Position numbers and translations under genes: made by a program. DNA of 64,000 nucleotides from Raja brachyura (Eukaryota): NCBI GenBank assembly GCA_963514005.1, contig OY740820.1, forward strand, positions 22,506,001 through 22,570,000, in the 5' to 3' direction. This document shows, one piece after another, positions 6,911-42,219 of this stretch. The notes beneath the pieces are model-generated. The model saw only the letters and a program-made list of their open reading frames with translations, was not told the origin of the DNA and made no database searches. The first letter of the stretch is position 1. Each line of letters opens with the position of its first letter.

Positions 6911-7049
6911 GGGGGTGGGAGATTGCAACCTTCACGTGGTCCGCCCCGTTTCGACTAATGCAATCAACTCGACGTGCACAAACGGAAGATCAAATGGAAC
7001 AAGTTGTCCAACAACTTTAGGCCATGCACGCCACACGAAAGACGAAGAA
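6911..7049 (+). mobile_element. HDV-ribozyme-capped short retroelement, copy 1, nested in a V-SINE
   Basis: TSD ccagtgta at 6903-6910 and 7050-7057, GAA-rich tail, homologous to three other copies. Confidence 0.85.
6912..6965 (+). ncRNA. Minimal HDV-like (CPEB3-type) self-cleaving ribozyme, copy 1
   Basis: P1 GGGGTGG/CCGCCCC, J1/2 GA, P2 GATTGCA/TGCAATC, P3 ACC/GGT, L3 TTCACGT, GT, tiny P4 (TTCGA), J4/2 CTAA containing the catalytic-position C. Confidence 0.85.
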
Positions 7050-7564
7050 CCAGTGTACGGGGTGATCGATGGTCGGCGCGATCTTGTTAGGCCCGTTTCC
7101 ACCCTATAACACGAAACTAAACTGAACAAAACTACTTGAAAATGGCTGAAATGACTAAAGAAAACTCAATCGGTGAATCAGTCAGACATCTTTATCGGGA
7201 AACCTTGCAGCAAATCACCACGGCAACAGAATACGGAATAAAAGCATTCAGAAACAAATGGAGGTTTTTCTTATAAAACTATGCAAGGCTCAGTCATTGC
7301 CCCTCAATTGGAAAAGATAAACAATCAGTAGAAGGCCACAGATGGAGGCCGATTGTACGGAGAATCTTCCCCTGCAGCCACTGGAGATGCAACACCTGTC
7401 CTCACACCTCCTCTTCTACTCCTTCCACAGCTATCAGTTATGACTTTATGAATTCTGTGCAGACAGCACCTGCAGTCAGGATCAACCCAGGTCTGTGGCG
7501 CTGTGAGGCAGCAACTCTACCGCTGCACCACCCATGTGTTGTTTTACACACCATGTGTGGTCAC

Positions 7565-14384: not shown

Positions 14385-15362
14385 AAGGTTGCAACCACTC
14401 ACGGGCCTGCTCTAAACCTTCCTGATCTATGCACTGCCACAAATGTCTTTTAGACGAGGCGTTGGTACTTTATTTGTCCTTTGTGGGACAGTTTGTGTGC
14501 AGAGTTTGGTGGCCAAGTTGGATGATAGTGACTGTAACTCGATCGTCGAGCAGGGTTAACAAAGTGATAAAGGACTTGATGTTTGGAAGGGCTGTGTTAC
14601 AGACATGTGTAGGCAAGGCAGGCATGGACTAAAATTATAAAAAGGTGATTATTAAATATAAATAGTAAAGATTTCCAATCCATTTACTAAATTCAGTATT
14701 TATTATTAAATGGTTATTAAAAAAATATTTCGGTAGGCATAATTTTCACATCTGCAGTACGCGACGATATTGAACTCGCGTGCTGTGGGCGCTGCTTCTA
14801 GCCTTCACTTGCAGCTGAAATCCTGCCTTTGCACGTGGGCTGCATGCAAGGTGCAGCGCATGTCTGCAGGACAGGAGACCAATCCACGCATGCATGGTTT
14901 TTTTAAAGGTGTTTTAAGAGTCGACTGGCTGCCAACAGGACCGATCTGCATATGTGCGTTTTTTTTACGATGTTTAAAGGTCGACTGTCTGCCCGGTGCC
15001 TAGACCAAGTAATTACTCACGGCACATCTTCTTCTTGTGTATGGCGTGCACAGCCTAAAGTTGTAGGACAACTTGTTCTATATGATCTTATTTGATTGTG
15101 CACGGCCTGGTTGATTGCATTCGTCGAAACAGGGCGGACCACGTGAAGGTTGCAACCACTCACGGGCCTGCTCTAAACCTTCCTGATCTATGCACTGCCA
15201 CAAATGTCTTTTAGACGAGGCGTTGGTACTTTATTTGTCCTTTGTGGGACAGTTTGTGTGCAGAGTTTGGTGGCCAAGTTGGATGATAGTGACTGTAACT
15301 CGATCGTCGAGCAGGGTTAACAAAGTGATAAAGGACTTGATGTTTGGAAGGGCTGTGTTACA
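14385..15362. repeat. 217-bp direct duplication (14385-14601 = 15146-15362)
   Basis: Apparently identical copies 761 bp apart; both give the same MHCHKCLL... ORF. Confidence 0.92.
15027..15155 (-). mobile_element. HDV-ribozyme-capped short retroelement, copy 2 (5' damaged, divergent subfamily)
   Basis: Reverse complement reads ttgcaaccttcacgtggtccgccctgtttcgacgaatgcaatc...gccatacacaagaagaaga. Flanking direct repeat actcacgg at 15015-15022 and 15158-15165. Confidence 0.8.
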
Positions 15363-15787
15363 CACAATCAATGTTCTAATTGATTTGTGGGGACGTGGAT
15401 GTCAGTGTGAGGTGCGGTATCTGTGGACGTCCAGAAAGTGCATTGAAGATGTGGAGCTGACCTGCCTCCAGTGTGCTCGCTGGATCCACCGGGACATTGA
15501 GTAATTGCACAGCGCGGCTGACTGATCGCTTGGCCATTAACATCGCTGCTTCACTCCCATTCAATTCTATCTGCGCCGGGCAAAACAGAATGATAACTCC
15601 TCTCCTCATGTTGAAGTGGTGCAGCGATAACATGTGGTCGAAGATAGACACAAAAAGGCTGGACTAACTCAGCGGGACAGGTGACCCGAAACGTCACCCA
15701 CATTCCTTCTCTCCAGAGATGCTGCCTGCCCCGCTGAGTTACTCCAGAATTTTGTGCCTATCTTCAGTGTAAAACAGCATAGAAACA

Positions 15788-15841
15788 GGGGTGGAAGATT
15801 GCAGCCTTCACGTGGTCCACCCTGTTTCGACTAATGCAATC
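15788..15841 (+). ncRNA. Minimal HDV-like ribozyme, copy 3
   Basis: P1 GGGGTGG/CCACCCT (G1-U wobble; T-A replaces T-G), P2 GATTGCA/TGCAATC, P3 GCC/GGT, L3 TTCACGT, J4/2 CTAA. Confidence 0.85.
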
Positions 15842-15917
15842 AACTCGACGTGCACAAACGGAAGATCAAATAGAACAAGTTGTCGTCAACTTTAGGCCGT
15901 GCACGCCACACCAAAGA
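15788..15917 (+). mobile_element. HDV-ribozyme-capped short retroelement, copy 3
   Basis: Perfect 12-bp TSD agcatagaaaca (15776-15787, 15918-15929); the element starts exactly at ribozyme G1. Confidence 0.9.
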
Positions 15918-16191
15918 AGCATAGAAACATAGAAAAATAGGTGCAGGAGTAGGCCATTCGGCCCTTCGAGCCTGCACCGCCATTCAATATGATCATGGCT
16001 GATCATCCAACTCAGTATCCCGTACCTGCCTTCTCTCCATACCCCCTGATCCCTTTACCCACAAGAGCCACATCTAACGCCCTCTTGAATATAGCCAACG
16101 AACTGGCCTCAACGACCTTCTGTGGCAGAGAATTCCAGAGACTCACCACTCTCTGTGTAAAGAATGTTTTCCTCATCTCGGTCTCAAAGGA

Positions 16192-28123: not shown

Positions 28124-29234
28124 TAAAAAAATATATCCATTGACACGGCCTCCACAGCCTTCTGTGGCAATGAATTCCACAGATTCACCACCCTCTGACA
28201 AAAGATAGTCCTCCTCATCTTCCTAAAGGAACGCCCTTTAATTCTGAGGCTATGACCTATGGTCTAGACTCTCCCACTGGTGGAAAAAACCTCTCCACAA
28301 CTAATCTATCCGATCATAAGTGATAGGAGCAGAATTAGGCCATTCGGCCCATTGTGTCTACTCCGCCATTCAATCATGGCTGATCTATCTATCTCTCCCT
28401 GCTAACCCCATTCTCCTGCTTGCTCCCCATAACCCCTGACACCCGTACTAATCAAGAATCTATCGATCTCTGCCTTAAATATATCCTTTCATTCCATTAA
28501 CGTGTTAAAACCAGAGGGAATCCAATTGGAGATAGACAAAAATGCTGGAGAAACTCAGCGGGTGCAGCAGCATCTATGGAGCGAAGGAAATAGGCACCGT
28601 TTCGGGCCGAAACCCTTCTTCAGTTGGAACGTTTCCGCTGTATGGTTCTATATCCTTCAAACACGTTGCTCTTCCAACTTGCTTTATATGTCTAGTATTT
28701 AGTTAATAATTCCCTCCGTACATTAATAGAACTAAAGGCTGACTTCTGGGATGGTCTCAGGTGGATATTTGCATCTTGTTGAAGGCCAGATTCCTTTGTC
28801 TACAGTTTCCCCATCAGCTTAGATCACTTAATATTTGGCAAGTCAGTGGCATTTAATACCAGCGAGATTACACACTTGGCCAATAATGGGCACATGCAAG
28901 CCTTTATCTCACTAAATAACGGACAAGATGGATGACTGCGGAATGAACCTGAAGGTTGCATCAGTCAATCCTTTGATCCAATGTCAATGTGACAGGGCCC
29001 AGGACCGGAGCATTCCACATCAATCACAAAGTGGCAATCATGCCTTTTAAAACCATTTTGCATGTGTGCTTGTAAATACAGATTCAAACAGCCCTCCTTG
29101 AACTTACACGGCATCAAGTGTAGATTATCAAATCCAATAAGCTTATGAAAATCACAATTTTCACCATACATTACTCTTGTCTCATTACGGGTTTCGTTAA
29201 TGGCATCTGATCTCAGGCGAAAGATAGTGTCTCA

Positions 29235-29465
29235 GAGTGATACAGTGTGGAAACAGGCCCTTCGGCCCAACTTGCCCGTACCGGCCAACATGTCCCAGCT
29301 ACACCAGTCATGGAGTGATACAGCATGGAAACAGGCCCTTCGGCCCAACTTGCCCACACTGGCCAACATGTCCCAGCTACACTAGTCATAGAGTGATACA
29401 GCATGGAAACAGGCCCTTCGGCCCAACTTGCCCACACTGGCCAACATGTCCCAGCTACACTAGTC
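29235..29465 (-). repeat. 78-bp tandem repeat x3 of a CR1 3' tail
   Basis: gagtgatacag restarts at 29235, 29313 and 29391. Confidence 0.85.
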
Positions 29466-30049: not shown

Positions 30050-31815
30050 ATTTAGCTCCTGGGGCTAATGGAATCAAGGGATATGGGGAGAAAGCAGGAA
30101 CGTAGCACTGATTCTGGATGATCAGCAATGATCATATTGAATGGCGGTGCTGGCTGGGAGGGCCAAATGGCCTACTGCACCCATTTTCTATGTCTCTATG
30201 TTTCTATGAGGAAGGATCCCATATCCCTGGAGAAGGTCCAGATGAGGTTTACAAGAATGATCCCAGGAATGAGTGGGTTAACGTATGATGAGAGTTTGAC
30301 GGCACTGGGCCTGTACTCGCTGGAGCTTAGAAGAATGAGGGGGGACCTCATTGAAACATACAGAATAGTAAAAGGGCTGGATAGAGTGGATGTGGAGAGG
30401 TTGTGTCCACTAGTGGGAGAGTCTAGGACTAGAGGACACAGCCTCAGAATTAAAGGACCTTTTTTTAGGAAGAATTTCTTCAGTCAGAGGGTGGTGAATC
30501 TGTGGAATTCTTTGCAACAGAAGGCTTTGGAGGGCGTCAGTGGATATTTTTAAGGCAGAGTTAGATAGATTCTTGATTAGTGCGAGTGTGAGGGGTTACG
30601 GGGAGAAGCCATGATTGAATGGCGGAGTAGACGTGATGGGCCGAATGGCCTAAATCTGCTCCTATCACAAACAAACATAAAATGTTGAAAAAGATTGAAG
30701 GGAGACTTGATAGTAATATATAAAATAATAAGAGGTGTAGATAGGGTAGACAGTCAGAGCCTTTTCCCCTACGATGGAATAATCAAATAGTAAGAGATAG
30801 TACACAGTTTTTACACAGAGAGTGATGAATACCAGGAGTTCGCTGCCAGAGGTGGTGGTGGAGCCAGATGTGATGCCAGCATTTAAGAGGCTTTTGGATT
30901 GACACACTTGCAGGGAATGGAGGGATATGTATCTCAGACAGGCAGATAAAACATGGTCTTGAAATCATGTTCGCCACAAACATTGTGGGCCGAAGGGCAA
31001 GTTCTTGTGTCAGAGTGATACAGTGTGGAAACAGTCCCTTCGGCCCAACTCGCCAACACCGACCAACAAGTCCAAGCTACACACACTTAAACATAGAAAC
31101 ATAGACAATAGGTGCAGGAGGAGGCCATTCGGCCCTTCGAGCCAGCACTTCCATTCATTGTGATCATGGCTGATCGTCCGCTATCAATAACCCGTGTCTG
31201 ACTTCTCCCCATATTCCTTGACTCCACTAGCCCCTAGAGCTCTATCTAACTCTCTCTTAAATCCATCCAGTGACTTGGCCTCCACTGCCCTCTGTGGCAG
31301 GGAATTCCAACTCTCTGGGGAAAAAATATTTTCTCACCTCAGTCTTAAATGATCTCCCCTTTATTCTAAGATTCTTTATTCTAAGCACTTGCCTGCACTC
31401 GGTCCATATCCCTCCAAACCTGTCCTATCCATGTGCCTGTCTAACTGTTTCTTAAACGTTGGGATAGTCCCAGCCTCAACTACCTCCTCTGGCAGCTTGT
31501 TCCATACACCCACCACCCATTGTGTGGAAAAGGTTACCCCTCAGATTCCTATTAAATATTTTCCCAATCACCTTGAACCAGTTGTCCTCTGGTCCTCGAT
31601 TCCCCCACTCTGGGCAAGAGACTCTGTGCATCTACCCGATCTATTCCTCTCATCATTTTGTACACCTCTACAAGATCACCCCTCATTCTACTGCACTCCA
31701 TGGAATAGAGACCCAGCCTACTCAACCTCTCCCTACAGCTCACACCCTCTAGTCCTGGCAACATCCTCATAAATCTTTTCTGAACCCTTTGAAGCTTGAC
31801 AATATCTTTCCTATA
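30050..31815. mobile_element. CR1 fragment cluster filling the IgV-IgC intron
   Basis: Multiple CR1 ORF2 C-terminal peptides and tails on both strands. Confidence 0.85.
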
Positions 31816-31891
31816 TCTTTGTGCTGTAGCGTTCTATGTTCCACGTCAGATTTGGAAGTATGTTTAGGATAGTATACGGTCGATGTTGTAC

Positions 31892-32242
31892 CTGCTAGTT
31901 GGAGCATGATGGGGGCACTGTTGTGGTCTTTGATGCGGACGAAGCAAGTGAAGCTGCCTTCATCTTCAATCTTCGCCTTCCTCAACAGCAGCGAGGCGTT
32001 GCCCTTGCCCAGCTGGTCCAGGAACAGGGCGGTCCGGTTGACGAAGCTCTCCGCCTGCACGCTTTGCACGTCCCACTGCCGGGAGTAGCTGTGCACCATG
32101 GTCTTGGTCTCAGTCAGCTGCCAGATCACGCTCACGTCCCCCAGAGAGAAGTTGCCCTCCAGGGTGAACGAGCAGTTCAGCGTCACGTCCTTCCCGTAGC
32201 GGGCGATCACTGGGTCAACTGGAACCTGGATGTCCAGAGCTC
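31892..32242 (-). CDS. CD276: CD276/B7-H3 IgV exon (351 bp)
   Basis: ALDIQVPVDPVIARYGKDVTLNCSF...IWQLTETKTMVHSY...NRTALFLDQLGKGNASLLL...DEGSFTCFVRI closely matches the B7-H3 IgV domain. Acceptor ttgcttgcag|GA, donor GCAG|GTACAA, phase 1/1. Confidence 0.96.
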
Positions 32243-32262
32243 CTGCAAGCAATCAAAGAGAA

Positions 32263-35532: not shown

Positions 35533-35714
35533 TATGTTCTCCACAGATGCTGCCTGACCCGCTGAGTTATTCCAGCACTATGTGAAACGTCACCTATCCA
35601 TGTTCTCCACAGATGCTGCCTGACCCGCTGAGTTACTCCAGCACTCTGTGAAACGTCACCTATCCATGTTCTCCACAGATGCTGCCTGACCCGCTGAGTT
35701 ACTCCAGCACTCTG
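35533..35714 (+). repeat. 66-bp tandem repeat (~2.7 copies) derived from the Penelope pLTR
   Basis: ccacagatgc at 35541, 35607 and 35673. Confidence 0.88.
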
Positions 35715-40667: not shown

Positions 40668-41335
40668 CGTGTGTGTGTATATATAATGTCTGTGTGTGCC
40701 CGTGTGTGTGTGCCCGTGTGTGTGTCCGTGTGTGTGTCCGTGTGTGTGTGTCCGTGTGTGTGCGTCCGTGTGTGTGCGTCCGTGTGTGTGCGTCCGAGTG
40801 TGTGTGCCCGTGTGTGTGCGTCCGTGTGTGTGTGTCCGTGTGTGTGTGCCCGTGTGTGTGTGCCCGTGTGTGCGTCCGTGTGTGTGCCCGTGTGTGTGCG
40901 TCCGTGTGTGTGTGTCCGTGTGTGTGTGCCCGTGTGTGTGTGTCCGTGTGTGTGTATATATAATGTCTGTGTGTGCCCGTGTGTGTGTGTCCGTGTGTGT
41001 GCGTCCGTGTGTGTGCGTCCGTGTGTGTGCGTCCGAGTGTGTGTGCCCGTGTGTGTGTGCCCGTGTGTGTGTGTCCGTGTGTGTGTATATATAATNNNNN
41101 NNNNNNNNNNNNNNNNNNNNNNNNNNNNNNNNNNNNNNNNNNNNNNNNNNNNNNNNNNNNNNNNNNNNNNNNNNNNNNNNNNNNNNNNNNNNNNNNNNNN
41201 NNNNNNNNNNNNNNNNNNNNNNNNNNNNNNNNNNNNNNNNNNNNNCCGAGTGTGCGTCCGAGTGTGCGTCCGAGTGTGCGTCCGAGTGTGCGTCCGAGTG
41301 TGCGTCCGAGTGTGCGTCCGAGTGTGCGTGTGCGC
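40668..41335. repeat. Complex GT-derived satellite containing a 150-N assembly gap (41096-41245)
   Basis: (gt)n-ccgt variants with a higher-order unit ending gtatatataat; (ccgagtgtgcgt)n after the gap. Confidence 0.95.
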
Positions 41336-41921
41336 GCTGCAGATGCTGGTTTGCACCAGAGAAAGACACAAAAAGCTGGAGTAACTCAGCGGGACGGGCA
41401 GCATCTCTGGAGAGAAGGAATGGGTGACGGTTCGGGTCCAGACCCTTCTTCACGCCCTACTTTGATTATTCTCGTGTACAGTATGATTTGACAGGATAGC
41501 ACACAAAGTTTTATCATTTTTTTCTCGGTTCACCTGGAAACAACATGAAGGAGCCAGCCTGGTCATGACCGACACTTGCATACATGCACCAGGGAAATTG
41601 CAGGAAAGTTTGTTTAGCTAACCCATCGATCGTTTGGAAAGTAGTAAGACTGGATCGGTTTAGAAAGGAGATGAGGAGGAATTTCTTAAGCCAGAGGGTG
41701 GTGAATCTGTGGGATTCATTGCCGCAGACGGCTGCGGAGGCCAAATTGGGCATTTTCAAGCGGAGAATGATAGGTACTTGATTAGGAAGGACGTCAAAGA
41801 TTATGGGGGAAGGCAGGAGAATGGAGTTCCATGGGCAAATAGATCAGCCATGATTTAATAGCAGAAGAGACTCAATGGGTTGAATGGCCTCATTCTGTTC
41901 CTCCGTCTTACGGAAAGCTTC

Positions 41922-41975
41922 AGGGTGGAAGATTGCAACCTTCACGTGGCCCGCCCTGTTTCGACTAATGCAATC
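41922..41975 (+). ncRNA. Minimal HDV-like ribozyme, copy 4 (one P3 mismatch)
   Basis: P1 AGGGTGG/CCGCCCT, P2 GATTGCA/TGCAATC, P3 ACC/GGC, L3 TTCACGT, J4/2 CTAA. Confidence 0.75.
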
Positions 41976-42061
41976 AACTCGACGTGCACAAACGGAAGAT
42001 CAAATAGAACAAGTTGTCCAACAACTTTAGGCTGTGCACGCCACACGGAAGAAGGAGAGAT
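41923..42061 (+). mobile_element. HDV-ribozyme-capped short retroelement, copy 4
   Basis: Perfect 11-bp TSD ggaaagcttca (41912-41922, 42062-42072); purine tail ggaagaaggagaga. Confidence 0.9.
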
Positions 42062-42219
42062 GGAAAGCTTCAAGGGCCAAAATGGGCCTATCGTAAATGG
42101 GGCATTTTGGTCAGTATGGACCAGTTGGGCCAAAGGGCCAGCTTTTGTGCTGCATGACTGTGTCTGCCTTGTGCCTTTGAGGGTGAGCAGGCGAATGCTT
42201 TGCAACGTTGGCGTCTTAC

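Follow-up and report, generated by a model that had tools for sequence, protein, structure and literature searches.

A dispersed retroposon family in Raja brachyura begins at a predicted P4-less HDV-like ribozyme fold

Results

Four copies with individual target-site duplications

A family of short, dispersed repeats was identified in a 64,000-nt stretch of Raja brachyura DNA (contig OY740820.1, positions 22,506,001 to 22,570,000, hereafter the window), and its full-length members begin, to within one nucleotide, at the first nucleotide (G1) of a complete fold of the hepatitis delta virus (HDV)-like ribozyme class that lacks the helix P4. We consider it probable that these are non-autonomous retroposons of ~130-140 nt of the type that lacks long terminal repeats (non-LTR), which probably depend on a long interspersed nuclear element (LINE) of the RTE clade and whose 5' end is made by predicted ribozyme self-cleavage. 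Directly observed are the anatomy of the family, its target-site duplications (TSDs) and tail motif, the coincidence of element start and G1, and the fact that the family is abundant in several organisms.

Reading and alignment of the four loci in the window showed one family of four homologous copies (c1-c4), inserted at four different and unrelated target sites. Pairwise identity (blastn) was 92-93% among c1, c3 and c4 and 83-87% between c2 and the others. A 27-nt core pattern matched exactly four times in the window, with all four copies hit and 0 matches expected in shuffles. The copies and their TSDs are as follows:

6911-7049 (+): copy c1; ribozyme at 6912-6965 after one extra G, with G1-C at the base of helix P1 instead of G.U; tail ending in CGAAGAA
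6903-6910 and 7050-7057: TSD of c1, CCAGTGTA, 8 bp
15023-15157 (-): copy c2; 5'-truncated by ~9-11 nt, of a diverged subfamily, with CGAA in the joining segment J4/2; tail AAGAAGAAGATGTG
15158-15165 and 15015-15022: TSD of c2, CCGTGAGT, 8 bp
15788-15918 (+): copy c3; begins exactly at ribozyme G1
15777-15787 (+): 5' TSD of c3, GCATAGAAACA, with the identical 11-mer at 15919-15929
15919-15929 (+): 3' TSD of c3, GCATAGAAACA, 11 bp
41923-42061 (+): copy c4; begins at ribozyme position 2 (without G1), with an A.C mismatch in helix P3; tail CGGAAGAAGGAGAGAT(G)
41912-41922 and 42062-42072: TSD of c4, GGAAAGCTTCA, 11 bp

An earlier sequence-only reading of this DNA had proposed four homologous copies with their own flanking direct repeats, and the alignment confirmed this with TSDs of 8, 8, 11 and 11 bp; these individual TSDs support a TSD-flanked retroposon family. 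The coordinates that it gave for c1 and c4 were retained and those of c2 (now 15023-15157) and of the end of c3 (now 15918) shifted by a few bases. Its claim that the 5' TSDs of three full-length copies end no more than 1 nt away from the predicted cleavage site was likewise upheld by the alignment, the offset between element start and G1 being at most 1 nt in 3/3 (none in c3, one extra G in c1, G1 missing in c4). With its own TSDs, no coding capacity and a predicted cleavage site at its first nucleotide, the element in these respects resembles the ribozyme-terminated non-autonomous non-LTR elements of the SIDE/NARTc type.

A complete P4-less fold in nucleotides 1-54

The ribozyme of c3 was delimited by a pairing table, the minimum free energy (MFE) structure of the 54-mer, a descriptor match and sub-threshold Rfam matches, and consists of the following parts:

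15788-15841 (+): minimal HDV-like ribozyme of c3
15788-15794 / 15817-15823 (+): P1, 7 bp, nt 1-7 GGGGUGG with nt 30-36 CCRCCCU
15797-15803 / 15835-15841 (+): P2, 7 bp Watson-Crick, nt 10-16 GAUUGCA with nt 48-54 UGCAAUC
15804-15806 / 15814-15816 (+): P3, 3 bp, nt 17-19 RCC with nt 27-29 GGU
15807-15813 (+): loop L3, UUCACGU
15824 (+): G of P1.1 (G37, then U38); one-pair P1.1
15826-15830 (+): linker in place of P4, UUCGA
15831-15834 (+): J4/2, C44 (U/G) A A
15831 (+): candidate catalytic cytosine, by its position the equivalent of HDV C75 and CPEB3 C57

A scripted pairing check found the nested double pseudoknot to be complete, with P1/P2 interleaved with P3/P1.1 and the C22-G37 pair present in c1 and c3, and it recovered every helix that had been named in the sequence-only reading of these 54 nt. 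P2 is invariant across the copies. The wobble G1.U36 closes P1 in c3, U36 is also found in c2 and c4, and c1 has G-C. J4/2 reads CUAA in c1, c3 and c4 and CGAA in c2, and C15831 precedes the 3' strand of P2 by four nt, a position that the cytosine also has in the CPEB3 consensus (CGAA) and in drz-Mtgn-1 (CUAA). Comparison with the Rfam consensus agreed with the earlier assignment of UUCACGU as the L3 of the CPEB3 ribozyme. A P4 helix was not found between P1.1 and J4/2, which are separated by five nt (UUCGA) compared to ~18 in CPEB3. The MFE structure of the isolated 54-mer (c1, c3) was exactly P1 plus P3 with both P2 strands unpaired, so the second pseudoknot can form. Nested folding of the whole element was no better than that of shuffles (z -0.11), a test that is uninformative because the fold is a pseudoknot. 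Overall these data support a complete P4-less fold of the HDV/CPEB3 type at the exact 5' end of the element.

No Rfam model matched anywhere in the window at gathering thresholds. With a permissive E-value, c3 scored 24.9 bits against CPEB3_ribozyme (RF00622; gathering 35) and 14.7 bits against HDV-F-prausnitzii (RF02682; gathering 44), and c1 scored 18.5 bits against HDV-F-prausnitzii (gathering 44) with no CPEB3 match. A coincidental resemblance between the TSD of c3 and the upstream flank of the model accounts for some of the CPEB3 score of this copy. The Rfam HDV-type models penalize the absent P4 and leave P2 unscored, and a generic HDV descriptor was therefore written, consisting of a 7-bp P1 starting with G, a 6-7-bp P2, a 3-bp P3, an L3 of 7 nt whose third nucleotide is C and, following P1, a G, 3-40 nt, C-N-A-A and the 3' strand of P2. 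It matched c1 and c3 and nothing else in the window, and none of 200 windows simulated with a first-order Markov model (0/200). A staged estimate put chance matches at ~8e-4 per 64 kb. Taken alone, this rate would permit tens of random matches per vertebrate genome; chance is untenable because L3 is identical to that of CPEB3, the match starts at nt 1 (to within 1 nt) of a TSD-bounded repeat and the fold is conserved across the family.

Abundance, 5' ends and variation beyond the window

Logan contigs of four sequencing runs from three organisms, out of 23 runs of which none is recorded as RNA, were aligned to positions 15650-16050 at 80% likeness. The contigs support a family that is abundant well beyond the window in several organisms, in agreement with the abundance predicted from the four copies. 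Summed contig depth was at its minimum in the bin 15776-15789 and rose ~8-fold in the next bin. Of 10 listed pieces covering the 5' part, 15788 is the first position in five, and three others begin at 15787, 15785 and 15784, with all three organisms represented, and the contigs of these pieces run on upstream, yet their similarity to the element begins there. The expected clustering of 5' ends at G1 is thus seen in 5/10 listed pieces with three more at most 4 nt away; since the listed pieces are a selection and not a census, this clustering is supportive rather than a census of 5' ends. Pieces from other organisms also cross the junction between nt 54 and 55 (15788-15884, 15792-15908 and 15788-15904). 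A 151-nt contig of a putative RNA run aligns to 15788-15884 from its third base, and so starts 2 nt upstream of G1.

Copy c3 lies between two abundant repeats (15690-15765 and 15930-16050), for which blastn finds 53 and 38 matches in the window, and the summed contig depth of these flanking repeats is more than 10-fold that of the element. The contig depth of the element is ~7% of theirs, and the copy numbers in the window are 53 and 38 for the flanking repeats versus 4 for the element. From the comparison of the depth ratio with the copy ratio, the density in the window of ~60 copies per Mb looks typical.

Three variants with a frequency of at least 10% were found within the ribozyme. At 15804 (G>A) the G is private to c3 and the A of the family gives an A-U pair. 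At 15819 (A>G) the variants form U5-A or U5.G in P1, both of which pair. At 15832 (U>G) the variant affects the free second position of J4/2 and gives CGAA as in CPEB3. The family polymorphisms at this frequency in P1 (U5-A/U5.G) and at J4/2 position 2 thus preserve the structure. Comparison of c2 with the other copies showed 2-3/43 differing positions in the ribozyme versus 12-15/72 in the 3' domain (Fisher P 0.03-0.08). The changes in c2 spare both helices of the 3' domain and fall in the linkers. The conservation of the ribozyme in this single diverged copy suggests selection on master copies.

The 3' module and its tail

The second part of the element spans nt 55 to ~124, followed by a purine-rich tail, and in c3 its predicted structure comprises:

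15842-15911 (+): 3' domain, a long-range stem and a hairpin followed by CCACAC (fold predictions)
15849-15855 / 15899-15905 (+): long-range stem, CGUGCAC with GUGCACG, 7 bp
about 15877-15893 (+): enclosed hairpin, 6-7 bp, AAGUUGU...ACAACUU
15912-15918 (+): purine-rich tail, CAAAGAA

The tails are GAAAGACGAAGAA in c1, AAGAAGAAGATGTG in c2, CAAAGAA in c3 and GGAAGAAGGAGAGAT(G) in c4. Elements of the Rex3 family (RTE clade) carry the tail GCG(GAA)2(GATG)n according to a review of Rex elements (PMC6274825). The tail of c2 has (GAA)2GATG and that of c4 has CG(GAA)2...GATG, and this match to the Rex3 signature makes an RTE-like tail a reasonable assignment, so that the earlier proposal of such a tail gains support. 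A pattern for the ribozyme core gave 0 matches in metagenome, prokaryotic-genome and viral contigs, which contain no vertebrates and so do not inform on its distribution there.

Neighboring features

The right-hand repeat beside c3 (15930-16050) opens with a series of CATAGAAA units; read in reverse complement, these correspond to a CR1-type (TTTCTATG)n tail. The sole reverse transcriptase (RT) fragment in the window is an open reading frame (ORF) fragment with a match to Pfam RVT_1 (61994-62524, -; E 1.4e-8), which lies upstream of, and next to, a tail formed by a (CATAGAAA)n array; a (TTTCTATG)n array is found near it, with arrays at 61128-61163 and 60876-60904. The fragment resembles the 3' portion of a CR1-like LINE, which is probably the partner of the abundant flanking short interspersed nuclear elements (SINEs) and not of the ribozyme element. 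Elsewhere in the window, an ORF at 31767-32252 (-) matches an immunoglobulin V-set domain (E 7.9e-8) and probably represents an exon from a receptor gene of the Ig superfamily. Young tandem arrays occur at 56811-57035 (25-mer x9, 98% identity) and 40691-41086 (14-mer x28), and two others, at 29234-29465 (78-mer x3) and 35534-35714 (66-mer x2.7), are composed of pieces of the common SINE-like repeats.

Discussion

Proposed mechanism

HDV-like ribozymes that serve non-LTR retrotransposons have been established since 2010-2012, and the general picture is unchanged by this family. The element would consist of two modules, a minimal P4-less HDV-like ribozyme of the CPEB3 type (nt 1-54) and a 3' end for recognition by a LINE (nt 55 to the end). 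Copies in transcribed DNA would be read through as part of a host transcript or that of a neighboring element, and the ribozyme would then cut immediately 5' of G1, which would leave the element RNA with a defined 5'-OH end, free of flanking sequence, and make a promoter of its own unnecessary. An RTE/Rex3-like LINE protein may bind the 3' stem, hairpin and tail, and copying of the RNA right up to its 5' end by target-primed reverse transcription would produce insertions that start at G1, give or take a base, with TSDs of 8-11 bp. From this arrangement and from the comparisons below we infer that the ribozyme is catalytically active and cleaves, that the copies are co-transcribed, and what the partner LINE is.

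Comparison with known systems

The principle is already known from R2, RTE, baggins, L1Tc, the short internally deleted elements (SIDEs) and NARTc (PMC3414825, PMC3383444, PMC3185411, PMC6765202). In PMC6765202, LINEs of the RTE and baggins groups are described as promoter-less elements with 5' HDV-like ribozymes that are co-transcribed with host or neighboring sequence. As cited there from Ruminski et al. (2011), these LINEs resemble the element in having a 5'-terminal double-pseudoknot ribozyme, a dispersed distribution that is not site-specific and a proposed liberation from co-transcripts; in comparison with that description, the element of R. brachyura has no ORF and no P4, and ~75 nt of 3' end follow its ribozyme directly. 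The R2 SIDEs (PMC3414825) and NARTc of T. cruzi (PMC3383444, PMC3185411) are similarly non-autonomous and keep a 5' ribozyme together with a 3' end used by a LINE RT. The SIDEs, however, insert in 28S rDNA and use R2, whereas the element described here is dispersed, smaller and found in a vertebrate, with variable TSDs and an RTE-type tail. In NARTc, nt 1-77 also serve as an internal promoter (Pr77). Short non-coding retroelements with a self-cleaving ribozyme are also known as the Schistosoma Sm-alpha SINEs and as animal and plant retrozymes (PMC6765202), but these carry ribozymes of the hammerhead class, Sm-alpha has an RNA polymerase III (Pol III) promoter and retrozymes circularize, and nothing here suggests circles.

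Metagenomes were the source of minimal HDV-like ribozymes without P4, which have since been assigned to phages; several members of this set other than drz-Mtgn-1 cleave in vitro (PMC10879173). The drz-Mtgn and phage theta ribozymes share with the element the helices P1, P2 and P3, the loop L3, a short stretch of nucleotides instead of P4 and the J4/2 sequence CUAA (PMC10879173). Compared by eye, drz-Mtgn-1 (51 nt) has a 6-bp P1 with a G.U, a 2-nt J1/2, a 6-bp P2 and a 3-bp P3, its L3 is UUCCCGU, the distance from P1 to the cytosine is 8 nt versus 7 here, and its J4/2 CUAA is that of c1, c3 and c4 (PMC10879173). By analogy, this match in layout supports catalysis as plausible for the element. 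The drz-Mtgn and phage theta ribozymes differ in that they adjoin tRNA genes in bacteriophage genomes, whereas the element heads a vertebrate retroposon, and no homology was seen outside the constrained core.

The mammalian CPEB3 ribozyme (RF00622) has the identical L3 UUCACGU, a G-rich P1 with a G.U at the cleavage site and GU after P1, and its J4/2 CGAA is shared with c2. The P1.1 of CPEB3 consists of one G-C and one U.U pair (PMC4836649), and the layout is the same here. In contrast to the element, the CPEB3 ribozyme is single-copy and intronic, has a ~18-nt P4 and is so far known in mammals only, and its P1 and P2 sequences are unrelated to those of the element. A copy of the CPEB3 orthologous locus was considered and rejected for this family, which is multi-copy, dispersed and TSD-flanked. 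Likewise, R2 SIDEs in the strict sense were rejected, as the four targets are unrelated and are not 28S rDNA, with no rRNA match in the window.

Weighing the evidence

Several observations weigh against a retroposon whose 5' end is made by self-cleavage. The support from the sequencing runs is at the level of contigs, and contigs cannot show RNA ends. All Rfam HDV-type scores are below gathering. Lesions are found in the individual copies, with G-C in place of G.U at the cleavage site of c1, the loss of G1 and an A.C mismatch in P3 of c4, and the truncation of c2, and no compensatory double changes were found among the four copies, which differ by one-sided changes with an invariant P2. The contrast in conservation rests on the one copy c2 with P 0.03-0.08. 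Alternative pairings can also be drawn. G37-U38 and A43-C44 could close a GU-UUCG-AC mini-hairpin that would hide the candidate catalytic C, and the 5' strand of P1 (15788-15794, GGGGUGG) is complementary to the conserved CCACAC(C/G) at 15906-15912, with equivalents in the other copies. The nested MFE structure of the whole element draws a 5'-3' panhandle, and this modeled panhandle could be due to chance or be an alternative conformer that competes with the ribozyme. Finally, a partner LINE was not found in the window, where blastn with word size 7 returned the four copies and nothing more and there was no long ORF. An autonomous LINE sharing both termini, which the sequence-only reading had looked to, was thus absent from the 64 kb by blastn and ORF analysis.

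Some of these points would also be expected if the fold descended genuinely from the 5' ribozyme of a LINE but were catalytically dead or irrelevant, with the end at G1 set by a master copy, a transcription start or the end of the RT template. The absence of P4, the sub-gathering Rfam scores, the lesions in P1 or P3 of several copies and the lack of compensatory covariation are all in line with such a relic. Against this, the core is complete down to L3, P1.1, the G.U and the C of J4/2, the common polymorphisms keep the structure, the core is conserved in the diverged c2, and P4-less ribozymes of like architecture cleave in vitro (PMC10879173), and we regard a dead fold as unlikely. It is also conceivable that the copies are fragments or recombination products of the two ends of a longer LINE and form no separate family, in the way that R2 SIDEs arise by internal deletion (PMC3414825). 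However, three independent insertions share the identical junction of nt 54 and 55 and have their own TSDs at both ends, and contigs of other organisms cross the same junction, which together indicate a unit that propagates, even if internal deletion was its origin; that the copies are mere fragments of a longer LINE is hardly credible.

A conventional Pol III SINE, or a family of retropseudogenes derived from a small non-coding RNA, would likewise fit a size of ~130 nt, many copies, TSDs and no internal T4 terminator; such a family would have an internal or upstream promoter, and its likeness to a pseudoknot would be incidental. Against this, ARAGORN found no tRNA, Rfam gave no tRNA, 5S, 7SL or snRNA match at E up to 10, and the best A-box and B-box had 3 mismatches each, which is the mode of random 130-nt pieces of the window. 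In addition, the descriptor match, the L3 identical to that of CPEB3 and the start at nt 1 are jointly very improbable by chance. We consider a Pol III origin very unlikely. The element accordingly does not qualify as a classical Pol III SINE with a tRNA, 7SL or 5S head, and the earlier statement that it has no tRNA A- and B-boxes agrees with these results (no tRNA by ARAGORN, box matches at random level, no run of four T).

Novelty and implications

The sequence-only reading overstated the novelty of the family, as R2 SIDEs, NARTc and the promoter-less RTE and baggins LINEs are already known to be headed by HDV-like ribozymes (PMC6765202, PMC3414825, PMC3383444). In the literature searched we found no HDV-like or other self-cleaving ribozyme for sharks, skates or cartilaginous fish, although a prior annotation in Repbase or Dfam is possible. 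The same applies to a P4-less HDV-like ribozyme in any vertebrate and to a dispersed ~130-nt element made up of a ribozyme and a LINE tail alone, neither of which was found described in that literature, and for both of which a prior annotation is possible.

The core is identical to CPEB3 in L3 and P1.1 and therefore provides a searchable candidate lineage for the unexplained origin of the CPEB3 ribozyme. It is a doubtful but attractive idea that the CPEB3-type core (L3 UUCACGU, one-pair P1.1, J4/2 CGAA) is an ancient ribozyme of vertebrate retrotransposons, with the single-copy mammalian CPEB3 ribozyme as an exapted insertion from a relative of this RTE-associated family and the element as the first non-mammalian kin to be identified. 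If this were true, no P4-less HDV-like ribozyme would have been assigned to a vertebrate before this one, which would also rank among the most numerous ribozyme motifs of any vertebrate genome.

If the ribozyme is active, hardly any retroposon that is known to set its own 5' end through RNA catalysis would be smaller than this element, with its 54-nt ribozyme and its tail of ~75 nt, and P4-less HDV-like ribozymes, so far found in phages and metagenomes, would enter vertebrate genomes. Activity would also illustrate how a SINE-like element that lacks a promoter can propagate by riding on the transcription of its host, and each intronic sense copy would be a potential site of RNA cleavage in a host transcript.

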